A DNA stretch of 63,959 bases, counting the filler, from Lenisia limosa (taxonomy: Eukaryota; Protista; Breviatea), in the NCBI GenBank assembly GCA_001655205.1. It is 13 parts of 13 records of this genome, joined end to end, with 100 filler letters (N's around TTAATTAATTAA, not from the genome) between each part and the next. Parts side by side here need not be neighbours in the genome. Positions count along the whole stretch, not along the records: positions 43,453 to 46,001 come from LPNZ01005183.1; 12 more parts are not named here. One strand, written 5' to 3'. The notes beneath the pieces are model-generated. The model ran no database searches. It was not told where the DNA came from and saw only the letters and a list, made by a program, of their open reading frames with translations. Both the position numbers and the translations under genes were made by a program. Below, one piece after another: positions 1,040 to 46,169 of the stretch (its first letter is position 1; the number at the start of each line of letters is the position of its first letter).

Positions 1040-4000
1040 CACCAACCTCAGAAGGTACATCCGTGATCATCGTGACATCGCTTACAAAACCAAGATTCAA
1101 CGAGCCGTTTCCCTGAGAAGATAAGATTTTTAATAGTCCTTGAGAGGCTAAAGCCTCGTGCAAAAGAGCAATACAATACATAATAATAATCGAGGAGGAA
1201 GAATAGCAAGAAAATTCATATTAAAAATCTAGAAAAACGAAAAATATGGAGAGCCCTTTATCGATTAAGGTCACCTATTTCACCTATTTTGCCACGTTTA
1301 TTCGCACAACTTCGGGAGTGGCTTGCCGTTATACTCCCCAAATCCACCATGGAATAATCTGGTTTACTAAATTAATTCACCCAAAACCACGAATAAATAG
1401 TCCAATTCACCCATACCACCCACTTATTATCCCCAAATCCACAATCAAATTTTCAAATTTTTAGCCCAATTTTACCCCTTTTCACCATTATCCTCCTTCG
1501 ACCCACCACGACTTCAGGCAAGGGCTTGCCGTTGTTTTCGAGGTAGTATACGTCCGCCGCCGCACTCGATGATAAAACTATCACCACCCGGAGGAAGTCG
1601 GGGTTGAGATCCCTGGATGAATCAGTTATAGTTTTGTTCAGGCACAGAATTGTAACATATTATTTTAGATTTGAGAAGGTACAAAGGACAAGTTTCTCGA
1701 ATGCATATCATCGATATATGCAAATGCATATCTTCTTGTTTATTGACTATTGCATCATGCGATAATATTATACCAGATACAGATGATATCATGTTTTCTT
1801 GTCCTTCAAAAATAACCACAACCTTCTCGTAATCTTCTTCTTTCTATCCATAGATTGTAATGAATATTCCAGTTCTTAAAAAGCCCCAGTAGAGCACTGA
1901 ATGATAGCAGTTTCTTTGAAGGGGTAAAGACAAGTTCCATTCAAATATCGATTTTTTAATTTATTCATTATAAAAAGGTAGCAGCCCGTGATAAAATTAT
2001 ACAAACTAAACACAATAAGTCCCGACACGGATATTTAGGTTTATCTTCAGTCAATCGTGTTAGCACATAAAACGTTTAGTTTATCTCATCCTTTAAAAAT
2101 GATACATATGGTAACCTAAACAGCCTTACTCTGACTAAACCGAAGCCCACCGGAATACTCTGAAAGACAGTACAGTTTCTTCAAACGGGTATAGAAGCCA
2201 CACGATGTCTGCCATGCTGAGAACAGCTGGAATTTGTGTGACACATATACAGTGGCTGCGGTACTTCTGAAAAAAAGGTTAGTAGCATGGTCAAAAGAGC
2301 AGTTAATAAATATCATATGATGATAATAGTGATAATGGTGATGATGGATAATGATTATAACAAAAATAAAGATGCTGATATTTGGAGAGTGGGGTAAGTT
2401 GGTGGGTGTGCAACAAGATTGAGGTTTCTGTGTGTGTGTGTGTTTGTGGGGGTGAACTAGTCAAATGAAATAAGCAAATAAACTCTGTTAGCTCCTAACA
2501 CAGGGTTTAAAACAAACAAAGCCCAGGTCAGCGCACCGCAGCATCCCATCACTCCAGCGTAACGGGATGTGGGGTAAAAATGCAAGCATAATTGGAACGT
2601 GAGGGGGGTATGACAGAATGCTGGGAACGCAAATACAGCCCCATCCTCCACATAATAACACATATATAAATACACTCCCAAGGGTAATAATTACCTCCCC
2701 CCCCCCCTTTGGGCTTCNNNNNNNNNNNNNNNNNNNNNNNNNNNNNNNNNNNNNNNNNNNNNNNNNNNNNNNNNNNNNNNNNNNNNNNNNNNNNNNNNNN
2801 NNNNNNNNNNNNNNNNNNNNNNNNNNNNNNNNNNNNNNNNNNNNNNNNNNNNNNNNNNNNNNNNNNNNNNNNNNNNNNNNNNNNNNNNNNNNNNNNNNNN
2901 NNNNNNNNNNNNNNNNNNNTATTGGTGGAGAGTAACATTACGGGATTACCTGGGGGTGTAACGGAGTTGGGTTAAAATTCCAAATATCGTCAAAATAAAG
3001 GGATATCAGCAGCGAATTCGAATAATAGCTTACCTTATTGCCAGCTCAAATACAATGTAATGGTATAACGCTTATAAGAGATATTGGATTATTGTATAAT
3101 ATACTATGATAATAGAATTGCCAACCCGAGTAAAAGAGGGTCTCATTGAGAGCCAGTTCGGTTGCCCCCTTAGTTTTGGCCTTGTCTTTCTCCAGGGGTT
3201 TTGGAGCGGTTGGGCTTATCGGGAGAGGCACTGTTTGGGTGTGAATGACAGGGGGGTGGGGGGGTGGAGTAAAGCTGGCTTTTCTTGTCATAAATTTTCC
3301 AATTTTACTCCGATTTCATTACAGCACTGTATAGTTTTCAGATACAATCCACCATTACCACCATAATCCCCAATGTGTCTTCTCAACTCCGTATCTCCGC
3401 TCACATAAAGGTACATTAACACTAGGACTTCAGGTTACAAAATACTTGTAAAATATCGATAGCTATCTAGGATTTATTGAGAAATCCAGTAATTGTTTTG
3501 AAACGAAGTGAAGCCCTACATAACATACAACGGAATTCCCCAAAAAATCCCCCCACAGTCCACGTCGCTCAATACGGGAAGGTCGAAGGTCACTTTTGGG
3601 TTAACGTGCAGCGGCCTTACTGTCCTATACATTCAGGTGCAGGTGCAGGGGGGTAAAATTGGAAAATTTATGAGACAAAAAAAAAAGCCCAAAATCAATT
3701 CTGTTGGCTGATGAAACACCAGGGTTGATAATTATCAACAAAACAAACAGACCCAGACCAATCGCTTCTGACCGCATCCCATCACTCNNNNNNNNNNNNN
3801 NNNNNNNNNNNNNNNNNNNNNNNNNNNNNNNNNNNNNNNNNNNNNNNNNNNNNNNNNNNNNNNNNNNNNNNNNNNNNNNNNNNNNNNNNNNNNNNNNNNN
3901 NNNNNNNNTGGTGGCTTGACCAATATTATCAAAACTTCCCCATAAAAAAACTCGAACACTTATCATCAGTTGTTATCGGTAATAAATGAGCCAAAATATT

Positions 4001-4700
4001 TTTGTACATTATAGAACGCCAACAAGTGCTGCGCAAAAAGACCCCACTCAACTTTGCCTGCTCCTTCTTCTGTGCGTCTTTCTGGCCTCGATATCCCCGC
4101 GATCGCCTTTCTTTGTGCTTTCGTCGATGTTTGGCGTTTGGGGAAACCACTTTAGGGGGCGGGGACATGATCACCCTTTGGGGCATGTTTGGTGAGATCG
4201 GCGATGACAGGAAGACTGGTGGCGGAGTTGGGAGAAGAGCATTTTCGTCAGGCTGTTGTTGAACGTCTTTAGGCTCAACATGGGGAGTGAAAGACTGGGA
4301 CATTTCGGCTGGTGCTCAAATCTACATTATTTATTAGAGGAATGCTGGATGTTGTGACTCTGTACAACGTTTACCGCGATTTCCCAGGAAATTCCGTTGT
4401 ATCTTAAGTGAATCTTGATATGAACGGAGGGGAAAGTGGGAAAGACTGGAAACTGACCAACTGGAAAGAGGAGGTACACTGTCGCGGATCGGTTAAAACT
4501 GGTTTGCCCGGAGGGCAAGTTGCCTCGGATCTGACCGAACCGGACAGGGTCTATTTCAATTAAATTATCCGGTTTTCGGCAAAGTCTTTCACGATGAATA
4601 CTACCTCGATATTGATAGAGAATCAAAAGTTATGCTTAATGATGAGCGGAGAGACGATGCCGCTCTTACCGACGCTTTCATCCCGAAGTTACCATCGGCA
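1040..4700 (-). CDS. Spliced gene with a BRAP2 (BRCA1-associated protein 2/IMP)-like N-terminal RRM-type domain; partial, boundaries approximate
   Basis: Joined exons (~2280-2150, ~1610-1510, ~1115-1045) read HCICVTQIPAVLSMADIVWLLYPFEETVLSFRVFR-DLNPDFLRVVIVLSSSAAADVYYLENNGKPLPE-GNGSLNLGFVSDVTM. This resembles the BRAP2 pattern (C+L.VP..++..D+..F...+R++R...VL+.F...A..FY..NG+.F). Pro/Lys-rich exons lie upstream (ORF 3929-4303). No RING or zf-UBP seen. Confidence 0.55.
3625..3785 (-). repeat. Intron-repeat R2 (whole intron); related copies at 2428-2552, 63862-63959, 44345-44411, 44690-44737, 56005-56040, 11318-11350
   Basis: 5' GTGATGGGATGC...(TT)TGTTTGTTTT...CAGCCAACAGA(A/G)TTGATTTT...CATAAATTTTCCAATTTTACCCCC...AG. 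Confidence 0.8.
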
Positions 4701-4984
4701 TTTCGCTTTTAAGTGTGAGCAGAGACCTTTTTTTCACCATCTATTTTGAAATTGTTTTCATTATACGTCTCTTTCTTCTGGTAGGTACCCTTCTGCCCTC
4801 GTTTCCTCTTGCTTAGGCTTCTCTTGCTCCCCTTCTGCTCAACTCTTACCTCACTTTTACTTGTCTTTGTGATTAAATTCTATTCTCGGCTTGGCTATTG
4901 GCTATTTTATCTAACCGTTCAGACTCTTGACTTGACTGTGTGAACACCTGCACTTTGACTGGAAGATCCCTACATTGCCCGACA

Positions 4985-7847
4985 ATGGTTGATCAAACTA
5001 CTGAAAGTAGGCAAACATAGAGATGCACTTTCACTTCTGGATGAAATTTGAGAGACGCCGATGATTTCATGTATCATGCATCCAGAGATATTGGTTTATT
5101 AATTCATAATAATGTTATTTTCCATTTCCATTATGACTCCCAGGACAACTGGCAACAGCCTCAACAGCTTCTAAGATCCCCGTTGCCCAGAAAGCAAATT
5201 GTCAGAATAGTGGTGGGGGGAGGTAGAAAGCACCATTATTTCCACAGTAGAACAGCCTTTTTTTATTATTGATTATATGACCAACAGAGTGATTGTTGTG
5301 ATGCCTTTTGTTCCATAATTGTTCCATTATGACACACCCTCCAGCTGCACCTTCGCCCGATGTTTACGAGCTTCGATGGGGCAACATGACCCTTATCCCT
5401 TCCCTGATTTATGGGTAAGCCATTTTTGGAGATTGTGGAGATACGCTTCACAGTCTTATCTGTTATTTTAGTTTTGTTTTGCGATAATTTCTCCTCCCCT
5501 CCCAGGTTTATTGTTGGATTCTTCTTCCTGTACCTCTTCTATCATCTTGTCGACCAGGAGTGGACCTATGACTACTTCCTTATCTACCTTGGGTACTACA
5601 TCAACGCTGGTGAGCTGGGGGGATGATGTGTGGAGTTGATTCCAGTTTTATTTGTTGTTTGTTTCATCCCATTTTACTCCTCTAAGGCATCATCATGGCG
5701 CAATACTACCCCATTAGCCCTATTCCGAGCCCAGTCAACCTCTATCGTCATCTTATTGCTGTTGTTTGTTCTGCCATCTTCTTTGCGGTTCATAAGATGT
5801 TCTTCCAATTGATCAATCTCGACATCGATAATCTTGCTGTGAGAAGGGGATGGGTTTTTATTATCTTTCCTCTTTCACGTGACTCTCTTGATTTGTCACA
5901 TGAAACTCATTGTTTAGATTGAGAAAACCGCGCATTTCACATGGATTATCCTAGGCTTCACAATGTTCGGGTATGCCGATATATTGGGTTATTTTGAAGA
6001 TTTTCTTTCCTTTCCTCGTGTATTTATGTCTCTCATTCTCTTCTTCGATGCTGTTTTTTGTTTATCTATTTTAATTTCTATTTCTCTGACGTCTTAGATT
6101 CGACCATGCTCACTTCCACAACCATCTCACCGGATGGATGAAGATCTCCACCCTCAGATGGATCACCTTCGACCTTGTTGCCTGGGCTATTTGGTTCCTT
6201 GTCTTCTACTCTCCGATCAATGCTGATGCTGGTAGGGGGTTATAGGGATAATAATGGTACTTCTGAGAGGGGGGGATGACAGTTTATCTTGATTTATTTT
6301 GTACATTCTCTAGTTATTCTAACATGCCTTGTTTATCGAGAAAGTCAAGGCTCTTTCTTTGAATCCTTTTTATCCCCCCCATTAGTTCATTTTGTAACCC
6401 ATTAAATCATTGCTCTAAATTCATTTCTTTTATATTTCAGGTGGTAACTTTTCGATCACTGGTGCTAATGGCTGGAATGCTTTCCTCCAATGGGTGAATG
6501 GGGGTGCTATTTGGTAGCGTTTGTAATTGCTATTCTGGTAAGACTTTCGCTTAAACTTGAATCCAAGGGGATACCGAATTCTAATGCTGATATTATACTC
6601 TGATTTTAGTTTGATACCCAAATGTTTATACATTTCATATCTGACAATTCAGTTCGTGATGTGTCAGCTGCTTCTCGAGTTTATGTGGACCGACTGGTTG
6701 GAAACAGTGACCTTCTTCAAAAGACACTCGGTGGGGGGTTGAATAAGAAATATGGCCTTTTTTTGAACAATTCAATCTGGACACAAGTTTTCTGTTTCAC
6801 AAAAGATATATGGTGATAGAATAGCTGGACTTGTTCTCAAATTGAAGACTCATATATACATATATTATTATTTGTAACTTTCTCTCACCCTTTCAGTTCC
6901 ACCGTGGAGCTTGTACTGTCTCAATGTGCGCCTTCGTGGCCCTGTTCTTCACCTTCAACTCATTTGTCGTTCTCCACTTCTTCTTTGGTTGCGAAGATGA
7001 CTCAGTTCATACTTCTGAGGTTGGGAGGGGGGGTGTAAGGGTGGTCCAAAGCCGGTAAAACACTTGATTTGAACAAAAAATTTGAGTTATCCTTCTTGTT
7101 TCACCCCACAGTTATGGCATGCTGTTCTCGCGGCAGGAACGTCTCCTATTATTCCAATGTACTCCTTCGGTATTTTCTCAAACATGTTCAACGATACTCG
7201 TCTCAGCCCACTTAACAGAAGCCTTTTGCGAAGCCTAGTCACTCTTGCTGGTGGGTGGTTAACACCAGTTATTTTGTTGCACAAATACAAATCATATTTA
7301 TGATTCTAGTACTAGAAACTTTTCAAAAATCCACATCTAAAATCTTTCATATTTCACAAATCCTGATTTTGATATTCCCAGGAATGGTGGTTGTCTACTT
7401 CGGCTGGCATTTTGCAGTCGCGAAAACAGGCATTGCTGGCAACCATGAGTGGCTTCATGAGGAAGATGTGGTATGAGTGGCTTCATGAGGAAGACGTGGC
7501 ATGTGGGGAGCTTTGGGAAAACAGTTAAATGTGTTTATTGCTTTATAATGTTCATACTATAGGATGTTTTGTTGTGTGGGTGGTGTAACCATTGGGGTGT
7601 TCGTGAGGATAGTGTATGTGGGGTTTCTATGCGTGAGTTTACTATTCATTCTGTTGATTCTTGTATTTGAAACATTAATCTAATGACTTAGGCTTTCAAT
7701 TTCCTCTGCGGTTTGCCCCTCTTAACACACAAATGGTTTACCAACAACGTGTGGGCAAAGAAGAAGGTCTCTTCTCTAACCCGTGTGATGAGTACCCCTT
7801 CTGAGCTCTCTGCCATTCGTGAAATGCCAGCTTCCTCTCAAGTCTAG
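4985..7847 (+). CDS. Uncharacterised polytopic membrane protein, about 12 exons
   Basis: GT-AG exons give a continuous hydrophobic protein: FIVGFFFLYLFYHLVDQEW, FDHAHFHNHLTGW, FVMCQLLLEFMWTDW, GMVVVYFGWHFAV; stop TAG at 7845-7847. No family recognised. Confidence 0.65.
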
Positions 7848-8299: not shown

Positions 8300-11200
8300 G
8301 AGGTCAACGTTGTGCAATAAAGTTGAGGTTAAAACATGGTACATAAAGATCCGGCCGTTAAAGCAGGTGTCACTCAAGAACGTTATTAAATTGGAAAACT
8401 TGATTTCTAGATCTGGGTACAAATCCCGACCTTTCAATTATTGGTAACATACTTGCTATAAATCCAGCAATACTATCACCAACACATTCAGGGACCCTCA
8501 ACAAACCATCATCAGATCAACAGAGCCAGTCGGAGCCACTTTGTACTGAGATGTTATCTGATCACCAAGATCTAGAACCATGATTTGGTGATTTGGTGGG
8601 GGATATGGGTTATTTAAAAATAGGGAATAGTGTGCAATATCGGAAGACGTGAGGGGTGGATGAATGGCTGCAATTAAGAAGCATAACAAGGGGGGGGGGG
8701 TAAAACGAAGGAAATTTCGATGAATATTGGCGTAAAGTTAATAATCACGAACCGAATAAACTGAAACTCCAAACAAACAAAAACAAACAATAACAAGCAC
8801 GAGCAACCAACGTGCGGCGGCGGCGGGACGGGGGGGGGGGNNNNNNNNNNNNNNNNNNNNNNNNNNNNNNNNNNNNNNNNNNNNNNNNNNNNNNNNNNNN
8901 NNNNNACAACACACAACTTTTGATAACTACAAAACAAACAAAGCTAGGCCAGTAGGGTGAGGACCGTGGGCGACACTTATATATAGAAATTTGCTTAATG
9001 CTCCTAAAAGAGGCTCATACCGAAAACTTGCTCAGCCCATTCATTCCGCCGATTACGCCAGGATTCCAATAAAGCACTAGGGGCAGAAAGAGGCAAAACT
9101 GGGGAGGGTCAATGGCAAGGTTTTCTATGAAGTATACAGTTACCGGGATAAGTATTGACCGATGATTGAGTAAATCGGTCAAGGCGTATCCCGGTCAGTG
9201 TACATACACCGACTGCACCCGNNNNNNNNNNNNNNNNNNNNNNNNNNNNNNNNNNNNNNNNNNNNNNNNNNNNNNNNNNNNNNNNNNNNNNNNNNNNNNN
9301 NNNNNNNNNNNNNNNNNNNNNNNNNNNNNNNNNNNNNNNNNNNNNNNNNNNNNNNNNNNNNNNNNNNNNNNNGGGCTTCACTTCGGTTCGAAAAAATGAA
9401 TTTCTCGATAAATCCTCAAAAACTATCGATATTCTACCGGTCTTTTTTCGAACCGAAGTGAAGCCTTAGATACAATGAATTTCGATATTTACGATCTGCA
9501 TATCATATCATATGTAGATATATGTATATAAGAGTATGTTGCATTACCCCCCTCCCATCCCCTTGCGAATTGGGGGTGAGAAGGGATGGTCTTTACAACT
9601 GACAGTGACGTTATAACTCCCTGTCACCTCGTAGCCCGTCAGTTCCCTCCATCACACAGTCTAGCCAGCCACCAGCAAAGGAAAACACTAGGACGGTCAG
9701 GGCTATTTTTGTTGCTGAAAAGACATAATCATTGTTTTTGACCAAATACTCTAATCAAAACCTCAAAGCAGTAGTAAGATTCCGCAATACCCCCACTTAA
9801 CATTCCAAATTAATGACAATTTAAAACACAATCTCCATACCAGCAGCAAGATAAAGCAGAAGCAGAGCCGGACCTAGGCTGCCGGACACAAACAGATCTT
9901 TTGATCGTTGGATCCAGTCATGCGAGGCTGTGGAGAATACCGCCCATTTTGCTTTGGTATCAACAATCTCACCCCTGAATCGGATTATCAAATGCATTAC
10001 TACTCAAATGCATTACTACTCTACTCAAATGCATTACTACTCATATGCATTACAACTCAAATGCATTACTACTATATTACGAGTTTAAAACCATGCTATA
10101 AAATCAAGATTAGTATGAAAATCTTTAAAGAACAATAACTTACAAAGTGAAAGTCAGTTTTAAAGAAGAAAAGAAGGACAGAATGAAGGAAATAAAGCAA
10201 AACGTGAAATAAAGGATAAAAGAAGATGAAGATTTATCCCAACCTGTAGATTTCTCCTCCATAGATCTCAAGGCCTTGTTGTCGGTTCACTGCCCAGCAC
10301 CTAAACAATAAAACTACATCGCAGTTGATCTGAACCATCAAACTACATATTTAGCCTTGTGCATCTAATCCTTTTTTTAAGAGAAATAATATGATACATA
10401 CATGTACATATACAGTATTATATGAGAAATCTAGGGACGACAATACATACGCATATATTGAGTACATTTGAACAATAAGACGACAGATTAAACCAAACAC
10501 CTAAGCACCTGTACAATAAAACTAGAGATATCTGATCTTTTGTTTCTGACAACCTTCAAAAGATCTTCGTTGTTCCCAAAATAACGTCACATTATACCCC
10601 CATACTTGTAAAATACACCACTCCACATACTTGTTAAAAACCACACATACTTGTAAAACACTTTTGCCATCGTATGCAAGCTTTCTCCAAAGAACTTCAT
10701 ATTTTGGTTCTTTACCGTACGGACAGAAGAGAGGTCAATTATTGCTTGACAAGCCTCGGCCATGCATTTTCCAGACTACATCGGTAATTTGAATGTTTTT
10801 TGTATAAATAAGGACGAGTAATTATAGTACCAAGTCCAAGGTTTACAACCAACAAATGATGCATTCACAGAAGTGATTCACCCACCCTTTTGTTATCAGG
10901 ATCGTAGATGGGAAGAAGACACGTACTGTTGTCAAGACGATTGACCAGGCCACTCTGTCAAGGTTATATGACTATGGTTAAGATTACTCTTTCCAGGTCA
11001 AAGTAGGGTAGTACACAAAAGCGGTACAATATCTATCGGGATTGTTATGAGAACCAAGGTGTTTTTGGACCGTGGTGAAGCACTGGTTTTAGGTGAGATT
11101 TACTAATCATTTCTATCAAAGTTGTTTTAATGACCTAACCCCTAAAAACCGATCAAAGATTGCGGTTAAGAGTCACAGCGGTCTTTTTGGGGGTATTAGA

Positions 11201-13530
11201 ATGGAAGCCCAGGATATAACTTGCCCTACCTTGACAGCAACACTCTGGTGGTTTCTCAGCGTTTGAAGAGACGAGATCATTTGGACACATCCCTTTGCTA
11301 GCGCCAAACGTCCGGCCTGGGGTTTGAGATTGGAAATTTATGAATTTTTGAGGGGAGTGTGTGTTATTTCAGTACTTCTTGAAATATATATGTATATATA
11401 TGCCACAAAGGTTAAAAACAACAAAATAACACAATGCCCAAGCAAAGAATGGAGGTTTCTTGTGTGAAAGGTGATGAGCTATCTTTTCTCAAAGGCAAAC
11501 AGCAAAAGCTATACCGTCAATAAGAATTACACCCCTTACCGGATGTGTAGAGACCCATGAGGTTTGGTGTCCTGATGCCTCAAAAGCTGCTTCCAAAACA
11601 GTTAACATAACCGAAACTTTACTCTGAAAAAGTAAAACATAATTTTCTTCATTTTGAAAGATATTTACATCTAAATGAGACAAATGTCTTCAAGGAGATA
11701 ATACTATGAACATACTGGAGGAAGTGATTTTGGAATCAAGGTGGGAGAGGGGGCAGGGGCAGAAGCGGGATTTCCCTGAATAATTGTAAGTGATAATAAT
11801 TACCACAAAAACTTGGGCTGATACTAAAAAGACTTGAATAGTAATATCAATACAAGATTTTATCGAAAATATAAGGGTTATTGTCATTTTGAAGTGTAGG
11901 CCTAATACAGTAACAGTACTAAAATAATACCCAAATAGAACTTCATTTGTTTCCAAAAGAATGGGCAACAATTCCCCTTCCCCAAAAACAACACAGCTAT
12001 GTAAATTTGAAATGAGGAAAAAGAAAATTTATAAAATTCAAAAAAGAGACCAGCTAGAAATCCAAGTAATGCTCACGAAAATATCTTTGTGCATCCATTG
12101 CTGTTTGAACGTCTTGCCGACACTTGACGTCTTAATCTCCAGATACTTCTCATAGGGATACTTAATTGTAAGTCTTAATATAGAGGGGTTTAACTTGAAT
12201 TGTTTGTCTTGATGTCACTCCCTCCCCTCATACCTCTAAAACAAGTTCCGGGTCAGAAAGGGCTTGGACAACAGAAGGGGCGAGGTTGAGGGGACGGTTC
12301 ACTGCACCCCAGCCGCAGTCTTTGGGGTTAGAAATGAGAACAGTTAGACAGAGGTTCTGAGTCAAGTTGTTCACTTTAGTACGCAAGATTTAGAGATGCG
12401 AAAAGAAACACGGGGGTAATTGGCAGAAGCAGTCCGCCCATCACGCTTATAAGACATTATTGGAGAAATTTTTCACCCAATCTGAAAGTAATACCATACC
12501 GTGATAAGAGGTAATGGATTATAACTGTGAATTTGTATGTTAAAATAAAGCTGAGACTGCAATCCGCACCATCACGCTAACAAGAGATATGGATTAGTAT
12601 ACGATATAAAATATGAAGAAGAAGAATACCCCATATGTCAAAGCCCACAACGCACCATGAAGCCCGTGGCCCAAATTAGGGTGAAGCTTGGGGACACTAG
12701 ACCACTCAGCCAGCCGACACCGGTGGTGGAACTCCCATTCCTGTAAAAGTAAAACGGGCTTAAAATCTCAAAACGACTCAATCCACTCTGGGGTGGAGAT
12801 GACTCTGATTTCTAAAAAAATATGAATAGAGGAGTGAGGCGGGAGAGTTGAATTTCTCAAATATAAACGAACACCCTCGGGGTGTATTTTTTGCGCAAGC
12901 TAAAAAGAGGCCCACCTGCTGCATTACGGTGGCACGGGCTCGGAGGTGACGGAACTCGGCATCCGCTTCCGAAGGGAAGGCCATTGCAGTCCGGGATTCA
13001 GGAACTATGGGGTATTATTAGAGCTTCACTTCGGTTCGAAAAAAGACTGAAAATCTCGATAAATCCTTGAAATCTATCGATATTTTACTGGTCTTCGAAC
13101 AGAAGTGAAGCCCTAGGTGTTATATCTTTAAGGAGGGGACATTATAAGGAGTGGGGGTGAATTTATATTATTATCAGGTTTTACACATTAAAAGGGGGAC
13201 AAAGCAACTAGTTTCCAAAAAAAGTGCCATCATTAAATCATCATATGAATCCCTAGATTGTAGTAATTTAATATTTTTACTCTTCTTAACAACACCCCCC
13301 CTCCCTACCAGCTCCATTTTCCGCTCCGGTTGTGTAATCTTCATCATCAGGAACCTCTAAAGAGTTTATTCGGATTTTGTAGAAGTGTTCCCTCTGAACT
13401 TTGAGGCACATGGGGAAGAAGCAGAAAAGGTTGGTGGCGATTATTCAACCCCTCAATACCCCTCTCGTATCCGTAAAGCCAATGAGAAAGCGATCCCAAA
13501 AATGAAAACAAACCTGAAAAACACATGATG
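8300..13530 (-). CDS. Uncharacterised multi-exon gene (possibly more than one gene)
   Basis: Series of AG/GT-bounded open exons, e.g. AFPSEADAEFRHLRARATVMQQ, EWEFHHRCRLAEWSSVPKLHP, YPYEKYLEIKTSSVGKTFKQQW, CFTTVQKHLGSHNNPDRYC, CWAVNRQQGLEIYGGEIYR. No family recognised; ends approximate. Confidence 0.45.
9373..9466. mobile_element. MITE family M1 (~90 bp, TIR GGGCTTCACTTCGGTTCGAAAA)
   Basis: Left GGGCTTCACTTCGGTTCGAAAAAA and right TTTTTTCGAACCGAAGTGAAGCC(T), followed by TA. Confidence 0.9.
9988..10080. repeat. Minisatellite (CAAATGCATTACTACT-like unit, about 5 copies)
   Basis: Direct inspection. Confidence 0.85.
13021..13113. mobile_element. MITE M1 copy, TA on both sides
   Basis: TA|GAGCTTCACTTCGGTTCGAA...CGAACAGAAGTGAAGCCC|TA. 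Confidence 0.9.
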
Positions 13531-43321: not shown

Positions 43322-43455
43322 ATGCGGTGGCGCGCTCCTGTTTTTTTTTTTTNNNNNNNNNNNNNNNNNNNNNNNNNNNNNNNNNNNNNNNNNNNNTTAA
43401 TTAATTAANNNNNNNNNNNNNNNNNNNNNNNNNNNNNNNNNNNNNNNNNNNNCAG

Positions 43456-45946
43456 GAAGAGCTTATTACCGGCCTTGTCAAACGCCGCGCCAAGTACGTC
43501 CGTCTCCAACGCGACCTTGTTGAGGATGCTGAGGAGGTTAAGAAGAGCCTCCCTGTCGAGGAGAAGGCCGAGGTGGGCGGTTGGTGATAGTTGGTGAGGG
43601 GTATAGAGTAGTCACTAGGGCTTCACTTCGTTTCGGTAATATATCAACTATTTTTGAGGATTTATCGAGAAATTTACTCTATTTTCGAATCGAAGTGAAG
43701 CCCTTGTAGAGTGACTAACATGAATGCTAAACGGTTCTTTTTATTGAATATTTGAATAACCTCCATTCAGGGCACTGTGCTCATCACCTTCGCTACCGAA
43801 TCTGGTAATTCCGAGTCCGCCGCCGAGGCTCTTTCTGAGCAACTCAACGCCGCTGGTGTTGCCACTAAGGTACACCCCAGGTTCCCCCTCCCCCTTCTCG
43901 TTTTATTGTTTTTGTTTGTTTGGAGTTTCGAAAAAAAAAAAAATACAGATTTCGATTTCACTCCCCAGGTTGAAGACATGGACGACATGACTGTCGAGGA
44001 AATGGGCTCATTCACCCGCTCCGTCGTGATCCTCTCTTCCACCGGCCAGGGCGAACTCCCTGTTGTAAGCGGGGTTTTATTGTTTCGTGCCCTTTTTTCA
44101 AAAATATAAAACTAATGAAATCCCTTTTTTATGATTTTTCAAAGTTATTTCCATTTTACCCCACTCAGACTGCCTACGACTTTGTTGCCGAACTCGAGGC
44201 TGCCAAGTCCAAGCTGTCCGGCCACAAGTTCGCCCTCTTCGGCCTTGGTGACTCCGTCTTCAAGGCCTCCTACCAGGGCGCTCCTATTCGCGTTGAGAAG
44301 GTAGGATAATTTTGTTTCATATTTTTTTTTCCAATTTACGTGTGTTCTCAGCCAACATAGTTGATTTTGAGCTTTTTTCTTCATAAATTTTCAAATTTAC
44401 CCCCCCCCCCCNNNNNNNNNNNNNNNNNNNNNNNNNNNNNNNNNNNNNNNNNNNNNNNNNNNNGGGCGACGACCGTGCCAAGTCTGGCTACCGTACCGGA
44501 TTCGAGCAGTGGGCTCCCAACTGCGTTGCTGCTCTGACCGGCGGCGAAGTTAAGGCGGTCAAGATTGAGAAGGCCGAGGAGGCCAAGCCAGTCGCTGCTG
44601 CCGCCAAGGTAGGCGGTTCGAGTCGCGACGTGGTCTTTTTTTTCAGAAGGCAGTTGAGCTGTTTCCTAGATCCCCTCACTCACTTCTTTTGTGTTTTTTT
44701 TTGTTTCATAAATTAATTACCCAATTTTACACCCCAGGTTGTTGCTTCTGCCCCCACTACCACCGTTGTCGAAAAGGTTGTCCACGACGGACTTGACACC
44801 CGTGCCAACTGGGGCCCCGACGTGCTTGGACGCAACATTGGCGCTGACGCCAAGGCTCCTGTCTACACTCCCCACACCTACAACTTCTATGGCGCGCCCA
44901 CGCTCAATCGCACGCCTGTTGAAGCCTCTTCTCTCGACCCTGAGAAGAAGGTCGCTGACGGCGTCCACTTTGTCGGCGCTATCGACTGGGACGTTCGTAA
45001 CTGTGAGAGGGCGGTCAGTGTTTTTTCCGATTTTTTTTTCTCGTTTGGTTCGTTTTTTTTTGTTTTGGAGTAGTATTCGGTTCGTGATACGTAGCATTGT
45101 GCTAAGATTCTTCATTGAAATTTCCTTCGTTTGACACCGCCAGTCCACGGATTCGAAACCGACAAGGGCACCTCCTACAACGCCTACTTCATTGACGACG
45201 AGATGCCAACTGTTATCGACTCTGTTAAGTACCCCTTCGCCCAGGTGGGAATGGGGCTGTGTGATAAATTAATGGGGTAATTGGGGGATTTATGAAGGCT
45301 TCACCTCGATTCGAAAATGACCGGGAAAATATCGATAGTTTTCGAGGATTTATCGGGAAAAGGGTCTATTTTCATACCTTCAAGCCCCTTGGTTTTCCCT
45401 TTCTCTCTCTTGACATTTCAGGAATACCTTGACCACGTTGCCTCCCACTGCCCTCTCGACAAGCTGAAGTACGTCGTCTGCCTCCACGCGTGGGCGGGGG
45501 GATAATGGAGTGTTAAATNNNNNNNNNNNNNNNNNNNNNNNNNNNNNNNNNNNNNNNNNNNNNNNNNNNNNNNNNNNNNNNNNNNNNNNNNNNNNNNNNN
45601 NNNNNNNNNNNNNNNNNNNNNNNNNNNNNNNNNNNNNNNNNNNNNNNNNNNNNNNNNNNNNNNNNNNNNNNNNNNNNNNNNNNNNNNNNNNNNNNNNNNN
45701 NNNNNNNNNNNNNNNNNNNNNNNTTCTTTTAATTTTTACATTATCATTGATTTTCCCTTTATCTTTGATTTTTACATAATCAGGATTTTAACTTCCCAAT
45801 TGATCGTAACGTATCATACTACCTCTGTATCTTCTCTGGCAACTTGCCATTTCCCCAGTTTATCGGTCCCATATTAACCATTTCAGGACTTCCTTGAGCG
45901 CCACTACGACACCAAGGAATGGAACTGGAAGATCATCTCCCCTAAG
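43456..45946 (+). CDS. Flavodoxin (CPR/CysJ-type)-flavodiiron protein fusion; both ends missing
   Basis: In-frame exons 43456-43572, 43771-43869, 43969-44064, 44169-44300, 44464-44608, 44738-45002, 45144-45244, 45422-45489, 45887-45946. Flavodoxin: ITFATESGNSESAAEAL, SSTGQGELP, FALFGLGDS, GDDR. FprA/FDP metallo-beta-lactamase domain: [59 protein letters not shown]. Two internal N gaps (44412-44463, 45519-45723). Confidence 0.85.
43618..43703. mobile_element. MITE M1 copy (inverted internal orientation)
   Basis: TA|GGGCTTCACTTCGTTTCG...CGAATCGAAGTGAAGCCC, in intron 1 of the flavodoxin-FDP gene. Confidence 0.85.
45003..45143 (+). repeat. Intron-repeat R3; related copies at 8690-8830(-), 55800-55905(-), 43870-43968(+), 56040-56085(-)
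   Basis: Shared TTTGGAGT..TATTCGGTTCGTGAT..TTCAT(C/T)GAAATTTCCTT(C/T)(G/C)TTT(T/G)AC..AG at intron 3' ends. Confidence 0.8.
45296..45387. mobile_element. MITE M1, diverged copy
   Basis: GGCTTCACCTCGATTCGAAAATGACCGG...TATCGATAGTTTTCGAGGATTTATCG...CAAGCCC. Confidence 0.75.
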
Positions 45947-46169
45947 GTACGCTGGAGGGCTGCGATGCTGAACAGTCTTTGTTTAGAGTGATGCGGTGCT
46001 GNNNNNNNNNNNNNNNNNNNNNNNNNNNNNNNNNNNNNNNNNNNNTTAATTAATTAANNNNNNNNNNNNNNNNNNNNNNNNNNNNNNNNNNNNNNNNNNN
46101 NGAAACAAAAAAAAAAAAATCCAGAAACAAATGGGGGGTAAATGGAAAATTGTAAGAGAGCAAAAGAGA

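Follow-up and report, generated by a model that had tools for sequence, protein, structure and literature searches.

A probable N-terminal flavodoxin-flavodiiron fusion gene in the breviate Lenisia limosa

Exons, introns and assembly gaps of the locus

In this study, a window of 63,959 nucleotides of DNA from Lenisia limosa (assembly GCA_001655205.1), filler between its joined parts included, was analysed around a locus on record LPNZ01005183.1. Three segments of the window at this locus match exactly within a public contig without N (ENA ERZ3820729 NODE_2683, 6776 nt; hereafter L005), on which 18 GT-AG exons join into 2040 nt, that is 679 codons in a single frame ended by TAG. The product comprises, in this order, a 39-aa helical and acidic exon, a CysJ/CPR-type flavodoxin, a linker of ~90 aa and a complete class-A-type flavodiiron core. 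Exons have a GC content of 0.58 (GC3 0.71) and introns of 0.38. An earlier note, made from the window, had listed nine exons, and all nine are present where it had placed them, with GT-AG borders and in one frame.

The exons lie on the plus strand, as does the intron acceptor CAG (43453-43455), the final 3 nt of an upstream intron that L005 1-67 extends by a T-run 33 nt or more in length and the module AAATTTTCCAATTTACC...CAG. These 67 nt share 97.5% identity over 40 nt with the 3' end of intron 15, and L005 together with all RNA and DNA contigs ends in this T-run. Exon 1 (43456-43572), directly behind the acceptor, encodes 39 aa, namely EELITGLVKRRAKYVRLQRDL and an acidic linker (GC1/2/3 of.77/.28/.67), and, containing no Met, it must be preceded by another coding exon. 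It would be joined in phase 0/0, at GT-AG borders, to exon 2 (43771-43869), which carries flavodoxin strand 1 and the FMN phosphate loop TFATESGNSE (Pfam Flavodoxin_1, TIGR01753), and the flavodoxin continues through exon 3 (43969-44064, SSTGQGELP loop) and exon 4 (44169-44300, FALFGLGDSVF loop) into exon 5 (44412-44608; L005 1028-1216), where its end and the start of an Ala/Lys linker read AMLAAGAEIVLPRGE-GDDRAKSGY.... Exon 6 (44738-45002) contributes 65 aa of linker and then, from ~44936, the start of the flavodiiron core, whose metallo-beta-lactamase-like domain extends through exon 7 (45144-45244; GTSYNAY, Lys328), exon 8 (45422-45489; ending ...VVCLH-A, CAC GC|gt), exon 9 (within an assembly gap) and exon 10 (45887-45946). 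Past this piece, exons 11-14 were placed at L005 2856-2951, 3110-3205, 3388-3513 and 3682-3741, and exons 15-18 at 3993-4094, 4295-4402, 4534-4666 and 4786-4895. A MITE-like element with 28-nt inverted ends was recognised by its inverted repeat within intron 1 (43614-43707), with a summed word depth of ~3e4 in DNA run X1 against ~25 in its flanks; a second copy, within intron 7 (45295-45390), reaches a summed depth of up to 1.5e5 in the same run.

Both assembly gaps are closed by L005. The first, which holds the opening 44 nt of exon 5, is 48 nt long rather than the 52 N of the window, a DNA contig of run X1 spanning it likewise with 4 letters fewer than the N run. Its letters (...CCCCAG|GCAATGCTC...) supply a splice acceptor and 15 codons that finish the flavodoxin in frame and place AMLAAGAEIVLPRGE ahead of GDD. 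The frame that had been assumed across 44412-44463 is thus correct. The second gap (45519-45723, plus strand) measures 279 nt instead of 205 N and conceals the 82-nt exon 9 (L005 2261-2342), (A)ESDHSSSIPHLCKAAPQIEVVTSVKCK, which extends CLHA to a complete H-x-E-x-D-H, here H-A-E-S-D-H. An RNA contig carries 80 additional letters precisely here, between 45489 and 45885, and because 2+80+2 = 84 nt the reading frame is kept. Exon 9 shares 50% identity with the L002 flavodiiron protein (tblastn).

Seven joints are confirmed by polyA RNA contigs (E2/E3, E3/E4, E6/E7, E7/E8, E8/E9, E9/E10 and E10/E11), and the loose RNA end past 45948 is the beginning of exon 11. Exon 1, exon 5 and the E1/E2, E4/E5 and E5/E6 joints occur in none of these contigs, and we infer these three splices from frame logic. 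A 1443-nt RNA contig, which begins at 44753 in exon 6 and is spliced to exon 7, has a length that fits exons 6 to 18 and ~50 nt of 3' UTR.

Flavodoxin and flavodiiron modules and the known classes

The N-terminal module fits, by its sequence, the FMN domain of diflavin reductases of the CysJ/CPR type. Its matches to Pfam Flavodoxin_1 are collinear (exon 2 to positions 1-27, E=5e-4; exon 4 to 68-111, E=1.8e-3; exon 5 to 115-143), and the spliced product, exon 3 included, aligns with residues 64-226 of the E. coli CysJ FMN domain (BLASTP E=5e-11, 27% identity). The TESGNSE phosphate loop and the SSTGQGE loop are present, as are the two aromatic residues that flank the flavin, a Phe and a Tyr at the CysJ Tyr positions. 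This type of FMN domain is common to CysJ, cytochrome P450 reductase, NOS reductase and the Lenisia protein, and in the first three, as in pyruvate:NADP+ oxidoreductase (PNO), a tethered FMN domain carries electrons. In diflavin reductases and PNO, however, an FAD/NADPH-binding FNR-like domain follows the FMN domain, whereas in the Lenisia protein the linker and the flavodiiron core stand in its place, and no FNR-like domain was found between the FMN domain and the stop.

Flavodiiron proteins (FDPs) form head-to-tail dimers that set the FMN beside the di-iron site and have O2/NO reductase activity. The spliced product aligns with residues 5-393 of NorV (BLASTP E=1e-69) and with residues 5-394 of a bacterial class A FDP (E=1e-66), so that the earlier description of a CPR/CysJ-type flavodoxin followed in one frame by an FprA-type flavodiiron enzyme holds. 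At the level of exons, the last 20 aa of exon 6 match residues 5-24 of FprA/ROO structures, exon 7 matches positions 27-57 of the NorV model NF008887 (E=1.9e-5), and single exons match the Giardia FDP 2Q9U (E=4e-9) and Moorella FprA 1YCF (E=1e-6). Exon 15 matches positions 2-32 of Pfam Flavodoxin_1 and, with the alignments to NorV and the class A FDP, puts the core FMN domain directly behind the beta-lactamase-like domain. All seven di-iron ligands of the FDP list (PMC13133992) are kept, as His355, Glu357, Asp359, His360, His422, Asp441 and His502, aligned to NorV 79/81/83/84/147/166/227. The H-x-E-x-D-H, H, D and H ligands together with the flavodoxin-like FMN domain assign the protein by sequence to the FDP family. 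Lys328 and Tyr538 occupy the positions of E. coli Asp52 and Ser262, whose meaning as second-sphere positions is set out in the same source. Because this Lys/Tyr pair is as in the O2 reductases of Giardia and Entamoeba, the predicted substrate is likelier to be O2 than NO, bearing in mind that in a 2026 study of E. coli variants the two positions alone do not fix substrate preference (PMC13133992).

Class A FDPs (Giardia intestinalis 2Q9U, Moorella FprA 1YCF, Desulfovibrio gigas ROO 1E5D and the core of E. coli NorV 4D02) have the same two-domain core of ~400 aa as the Lenisia protein, with the seven ligands, the flavodoxin-like FMN domain and a stop right behind the core, and the protist O2-reductase FDPs also share its second-sphere Lys/Tyr. 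Class A proteins begin at the core, however, whereas the Lenisia protein has ~280 residues before it, with a second FMN domain among them, and further exons upstream. Multidomain FDPs include flavorubredoxin, the cyanobacterial and algal Flv with flavin reductase, the FDP-ferredoxin of Stygiella, class F (Rd+NROR) in Trichomonas, Histomonas and C. difficile, and class E (Fe-S domain) in Syntrophomonas. In every described class from B to H/I the added modules follow the core, in agreement with the earlier note, which had called the extra domains mostly C-terminal, while in Lenisia the module precedes it and the TAG (L005 4893-4895) stands right behind the core, with no C-terminal extra module. 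The listed module types are Rd, short Rd, NROR, flavin reductase and Fe-S, and flavodoxin is not among them. An N-terminal flavodoxin-FDP arrangement was not found in the literature on FDP classes, and judged by its domain order the Lenisia fusion would be a new arrangement within a known enzyme family. FDP classification would thereby gain an N-terminal module, every extra module described in the literature found being C-terminal.

A fusion gene or two transcripts

We propose that the locus is probably a single intron-rich gene for a CysJ/CPR-type FMN flavodoxin, a flexible linker of ~90 aa and a complete class-A-type FDP with intact ligands, as predicted from the spliced sequence. Alternatively, a flavodoxin protein and an FDP might be made from two genes or transcripts, without a fusion protein, which we regard as highly improbable. 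In favour of separate transcripts, the E5/E6 joint is among those absent from the RNA contigs, the FDP contig starts 15 nt into exon 6, and RNA word depth is ~6 on the flavodoxin exons against 76 on the FDP exons, a gap that could reflect a second, shorter transcript instead of 3' bias. However, the FDP part cannot start alone, because an in-frame TAA lies 21 nt 5' of exon 6 and no in-frame ATG occurs before residue 320. The 129-nt interval between exons 5 and 6 contains an in-frame stop and lacks an ATG, and use of the first in-frame ATG downstream would remove ~40 core residues. Exon 6 moreover starts with 65 coding-like codons foreign to FDPs (GC3 0.62) that are present in RNA, the contig carrying 60 linker codons ahead of the core, and the phases of exons 5 and 6 agree at canonical splice sites. 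An FDP start codon inside intron 1 or intron 5 was also considered and ruled out, as the frames misfit and stops intervene.

Searches for relatives of the linker and the exons used large libraries. Exon 6 (88 aa), the FDP side of which is too short as a query, found no relative but a repeat-protein artefact among 1.84 billion representatives, and the same exon, used to scan metagenomes, found a single bacterial class A FDP, an ordinary one adjoining rubrerythrin. The intron-read-through ORF P0123 matched itself only, with no close fragments of 60-192 aa in the library searched. When exons were anchored on the NorV template in a 5.8-billion search, the matches were dominated by NorV relatives. 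Since these queries were at exon level, orthologues of the fusion may exist.

The upstream exons and the electron path

The earlier note saw in exon 1 a resemblance to the terminal helix of pyruvate:ferredoxin oxidoreductase (PFO, PFOR) and suggested that the locus may be the end of a PNO-like polyprotein (PFO-flavodoxin-FDP) channelling pyruvate electrons to O2 or NO on one chain. Exon 1 is coding, lacks Met and lies behind an intron, which implies more protein upstream, and its charged helix and acidic linker before a CPR-type flavodoxin had looked to that note like the PNO junction. Bacterial PFORs reduce flavodoxins, and when exon 1 was aligned locally with the C-termini of three PFORs, the best alignments shared the register R[FY]xxLxxxxPExAxxL (shuffle p of 0.30, 0.05 and 0.016). 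A profile built from the C-termini of 77 phylogenetically diverse bacterial PFORs, however, gives exon 1 a score of 1.1 bits and the reversed exon 1.8, and 19% of 5000 shuffles of exon 1 reach its score (p=0.19), which leaves the terminal-helix assignment unsupported. Exon 1 has no family match in Pfam, NCBIfam (which presumably includes a full-length PFOR model), the ESM Atlas or the PDB with its three PFOR sequences, and none in a comparison with whole YdbK. In addition, none of the 77 bacterial PFORs, in frames that reach a stop codon, continues into a further domain, and we found no PFO-FDP fusion described in the literature. The attachment of a pyruvate-oxidising enzyme upstream is thus unsupported, and the PNO-like polyprotein appears quite improbable.

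The 5' part might instead hold no catalytic domain and consist of a brief leader, a targeting peptide or a segment for oligomerisation ahead of a two-module flavodoxin-FDP reduced in trans, and this is a possibility that we entertain tentatively. It would be in line with most eukaryotic FDPs, which are stand-alone enzymes whose donors are unknown, although a 39-aa charged helix with a linker is commoner as an interdomain connector than as an N-terminal leader. The ~60 non-catalytic residues ahead of the FMN domain in E. coli CysJ, the occurrence of class A FDPs in several protists and the lack of a detectable family for exon 1 are consistent with a short 5' part. Less likely, the upstream exons encode another redox enzyme, such as an [FeFe]-hydrogenase or an NAD(P)H module resembling FNR, which would make a self-sufficient O2 reductase driven by H2 or NAD(P)H. 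Self-sufficient FDP fusions are known in classes C, F and H, and anaerobic protists are recorded as having hydrogenases that carry a flavodoxin or CysJ domain at the C-terminus (PMC4989108). In the PDB, however, exon 1 matched no hydrogenase chain, its one match being a designed peptide at chance level (E=9.7). We give a fairly small chance, slightly above that of the redox-enzyme reading just described, to a 5' part that codes for PFO or for an [FeFe]-hydrogenase and so makes the whole protein a self-sufficient pyruvate:O2 or H2:O2 oxidoreductase. If true, each chain would hold the cofactors of three redox enzymes, with an FMN domain that swings from an Fe-S enzyme to a di-iron oxidase; fermentative electron output would be coupled to O2 removal in one polypeptide, with a bearing on the oxygen tolerance of microaerophilic eukaryotes.

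For the flavodoxin-FDP fusion itself, the tethered flavodoxin would take the role that rubredoxin or fused C-terminal modules have in other FDPs. It would be reduced by a low-potential donor (pyruvate:ferredoxin/flavodoxin oxidoreductase, a hydrogenase or ferredoxin, or NAD(P)H:flavodoxin reductase), acting in trans or coded by the 5' exons, and would then swing to the FMN of the FDP core, from which the partner subunit might receive the electrons at its di-iron site, where O2 would be converted to water. To our knowledge, several anaerobic protists lack rubredoxin. The physiological electron donor of FDPs is unknown in many anaerobic protists, and the fused flavodoxin points straight to the type of donor and gives a protein in which the electron-donation step can be measured.

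Exon structure and closure of the assembly gaps

The piece studied (window 43453-46001, 2549 nt) consists of GC-rich blocks with strong third-position GC, between which lie AT-rich, T-run-bearing stretches with GT...AG ends. Its exons are E1 (43456-43572), E2 (43771-43869), E3 (43969-44064), E4 (44169-44300), E5 (44464-44608, with its start inside an N-run, gap 1), E6 (44738-45002), E7 (45144-45244), E8 (45422-45489) and E10 (45887-45946), the last being the ninth exon of the earlier note, while E9 is hidden by a second N-run, gap 2. Logan contigs from the two public runs containing this DNA were compared with the window, and its exon-sized ORFs were looked up by exact sequence. Two ORFs were on record, both on a 6776-nt contig (ENA ERZ3820729 NODE_2683, here L005), which is free of N and in which each of the three window segments recurs without a mismatch (at 65, 1072 and 2406). 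L005 was assembled independently but does not count as independent data, and it may rest on the very reads that gave the window.

Gap 1 has a true size of 48 nt in L005, and a DNA contig of the run X1 bridges it with 4 letters fewer than the N run. It contains an acceptor (...CCCCCCAG) and 15 codons (AMLAAGAEIVLPRGE; GCA ATG CTC GCT GCC GGC GCC GAA ATT GTC CTC CCC CGC GGT GAG) leading into GGC GAC GAC, which fill the flavodoxin at the strand 5 plus loop position of CysJ/CPR. The frame that the earlier note had assumed across this gap is thus confirmed, as the 15 in-frame codons complete the flavodoxin. Gap 2 has a true size of 279 nt in L005 and contains an 82-nt exon, which agrees with the RNA if two letters identical to the intron AG are added to the 80 letters of the RNA contig. 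Together with two leftover E8 bases the exon makes 84 nt, so that the frame is kept, and encodes the peptide A-E-S-D-H-S-S-S-I-P-H-L-C-K-A-A-P-Q-I-E-V-V-T-S-V-K-C-K. Based on tblastn of two FDPs (flavodiiron proteins) against L005 and on splice signals, L005 holds 18 exons, with CAG acceptors in 17 of the 18 and TAG in one, and introns of 99-251 nt. The exons sum to 2040 nt in a single frame of 679 codons, with a TAG stop at L005 4893-4895, and have a GC of 0.58 (GC3 0.71) against 0.38 in introns.

Probable unity of the transcript, and its upstream end

A polyA-RNA contig of 1443 nt joins E6/E7/E8, followed by 80 letters absent from the window and then by E10, and continues beyond it; its 30 loose letters past 45948 are the start of exon 11, and, judging from its length, it would start in E6 at 44753, reach E18 and include some 50 nt of 3' UTR. 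A second RNA contig joins E2/E3/E4. Seven exon joints are present in RNA contigs, and E1/E2, E4/E5 and E5/E6 were seen in none of them. The joining of E5 to E6 is argued from indirect but fairly strong evidence: the intron between them has an in-frame TAA 21 nt upstream of E6, no ATG lies between this stop and E6, E6 starts with 65 coding-like codons that are part of no FDP although the RNA contig contains them, the next in-frame Met downstream of these linker codons is residue 320, within the fold, and the E5/E6 phases agree. Against it stands the difference in RNA word depth between the flavodoxin contig (about 6; 43837-44291) and the FDP contig (76; 44753-45948), which we attribute to 3' bias of the polyA library but which may instead stem from a second transcript. 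No RNA contig was found for exons 1 and 5, and either cause could account for this. We consider it highly probable that flavodoxin and FDP form one fused protein.

The start of E1 at 43456, already given in the earlier note, is upheld by L005, where E1 follows an intron: the preceding sequence finishes in CAG, and the 67 nt before E1 comprise a T-run and a module found again at the end of intron 15 (97.5% identity, 40 nt). E1 shows coding periodicity, contains no Met and follows an intron, thus at least one further exon lies upstream. It had been suggested that E1 resembles the terminal helix of the pyruvate-oxidising enzyme PFO (PFOR), as in the tail of a PNO (pyruvate:NADP+ oxidoreductase)-like polyprotein. 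Against a profile built from the C-terminal 115 residues of 77 PFORs (80 loci fetched from many bacterial phyla), this resemblance found no support: E1 scored 1.1 bits and reversed E1 1.8 bits, and 19% of 5000 E1 shuffles equalled or bettered the score. As the profile consists of bacterial sequences only, it might fail to recognise a eukaryotic PNO junction that has diverged. Pairwise comparison with three PFOR tails gave one register, weakly (p = 0.30, 0.05 and 0.016). Given a score at shuffle level and a bacterial-only profile, the PFO reading is unsupported, not refuted, and a pyruvate:O2 polyprotein with PFO fused upstream seems rather improbable. Among the 80 bacterial PFOR loci (L007-L086), all 77 whose frame reaches a stop end at most about 250 aa past the TPP motif, and a flavodoxin or other fused C-terminal domain after PFOR was found in 0 of these 77.

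Domain composition and class of the product

The Flavodoxin_1 profile is matched in order by E2 (positions 1-27), E4 (68-111) and E5 (115-143), the end of E6 matches FprA/ROO residues 5-24, and E7 matches NorV model positions 27-57 (E=1.9e-5); single exons also match Giardia FDP (E=4e-9) and Moorella FprA (E=1e-6). In local BLASTP of the spliced product, residues 281-670 align with residues 5-393 of the E. coli FDP NorV (30% identity, E=1e-69), and with residues 5-394 of a bacterial class A FDP (33%, E=1e-66), and residues 42-221 with the FMN domain of the E. coli diflavin reductase CysJ (64-226; 27%, E=5e-11). Residues 190-280 form a linker rich in Ala/Val/Pro/Thr/Lys, with no relative among 1.84 billion representatives or in Atlas, and the stop codon directly follows the FDP core, leaving no C-terminal module. 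All seven di-iron ligands are kept (His355, Glu357, Asp359, His360, His422, Asp441 and His502). Two second-sphere positions are Lys328 and Tyr538; according to a 2026 study, which also cautions that these residues alone do not determine selectivity (PMC13133992), Asp52/Ser262 occupy them in the NO-selective E. coli enzyme versus Lys/Tyr in the O2-selective Entamoeba and Giardia enzymes.

Judged by its residues, the product would fully qualify as an FDP in the catalytic sense. The extra modules of published FDP classes (rubredoxin, short rubredoxin, NROR, flavin reductase, Fe-S domain, ferredoxin) all come after the core, and we found no description in the literature of a flavodoxin preceding the core or of a PFO-FDP fusion. 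The product falls outside class A due to its extra N-terminal domain, and outside classes B-I since nothing follows its core; with no FNR-like domain behind its FMN domain, it is not a PNO either. The N-terminal flavodoxin-FDP architecture in a eukaryote is real and, as far as the literature was checked, undescribed. We propose that the tethered FMN domain would receive electrons from a low-potential system acting in trans, or from a 5' part upstream of E1, and would stand in for rubredoxin by handing them directly to the FMN of the core. By crossing the head-to-tail dimer, the electrons would then reach the di-iron site, where O2 would be reduced to water. This putative path is modelled on the known workings of CPR-family FMN domains and FDPs, the cofactor-binding residues being its only observed part.

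Intron elements and flanking sequence

MITE-like elements with 28-nt inverted ends lie in intron 1 (window 43614-43707, L005 226-319) and intron 7 (window 45295-45390, L005 1903-1998). X1 DNA contigs pile up on them, with a summed word depth of 3e4 to 1.5e5 versus about 25 for unique sequence, pointing to thousands of genomic copies. Eight of the 18 L005 introns (0, 3, 4, 5, 6, 10, 14 and 15) finish with related versions of a module, some 35 nt long, that extends into the acceptor (in the window, for instance, at 44385-44411, 44700-44737 and 45105-45143), in the order T-run, CAT[AC][AG]AAATTTCC..TTTTAC, C-run, CAG, and a third module is shared by introns 4, 10, 15 and 16. The intron-end modules look like introner-type elements bringing their own 3' splice site; if so, introns would have been gained recently in this genome. 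The 1.9 kb 3' of the stop (L005 4896-6776), AT-rich at a GC of 0.40 and interrupted by a single GC-rich patch near 6240-6360, yielded no identifiable gene neighbour. L002, a metagenome contig found with exon 6, carries at 9989-13052 a bacterial class A FDP and then rubrerythrin and acyl-CoA dehydrogenase, a gene order echoing the FDP-butyryl-CoA dehydrogenase pairing published for Fusobacterium (PMC12528894).
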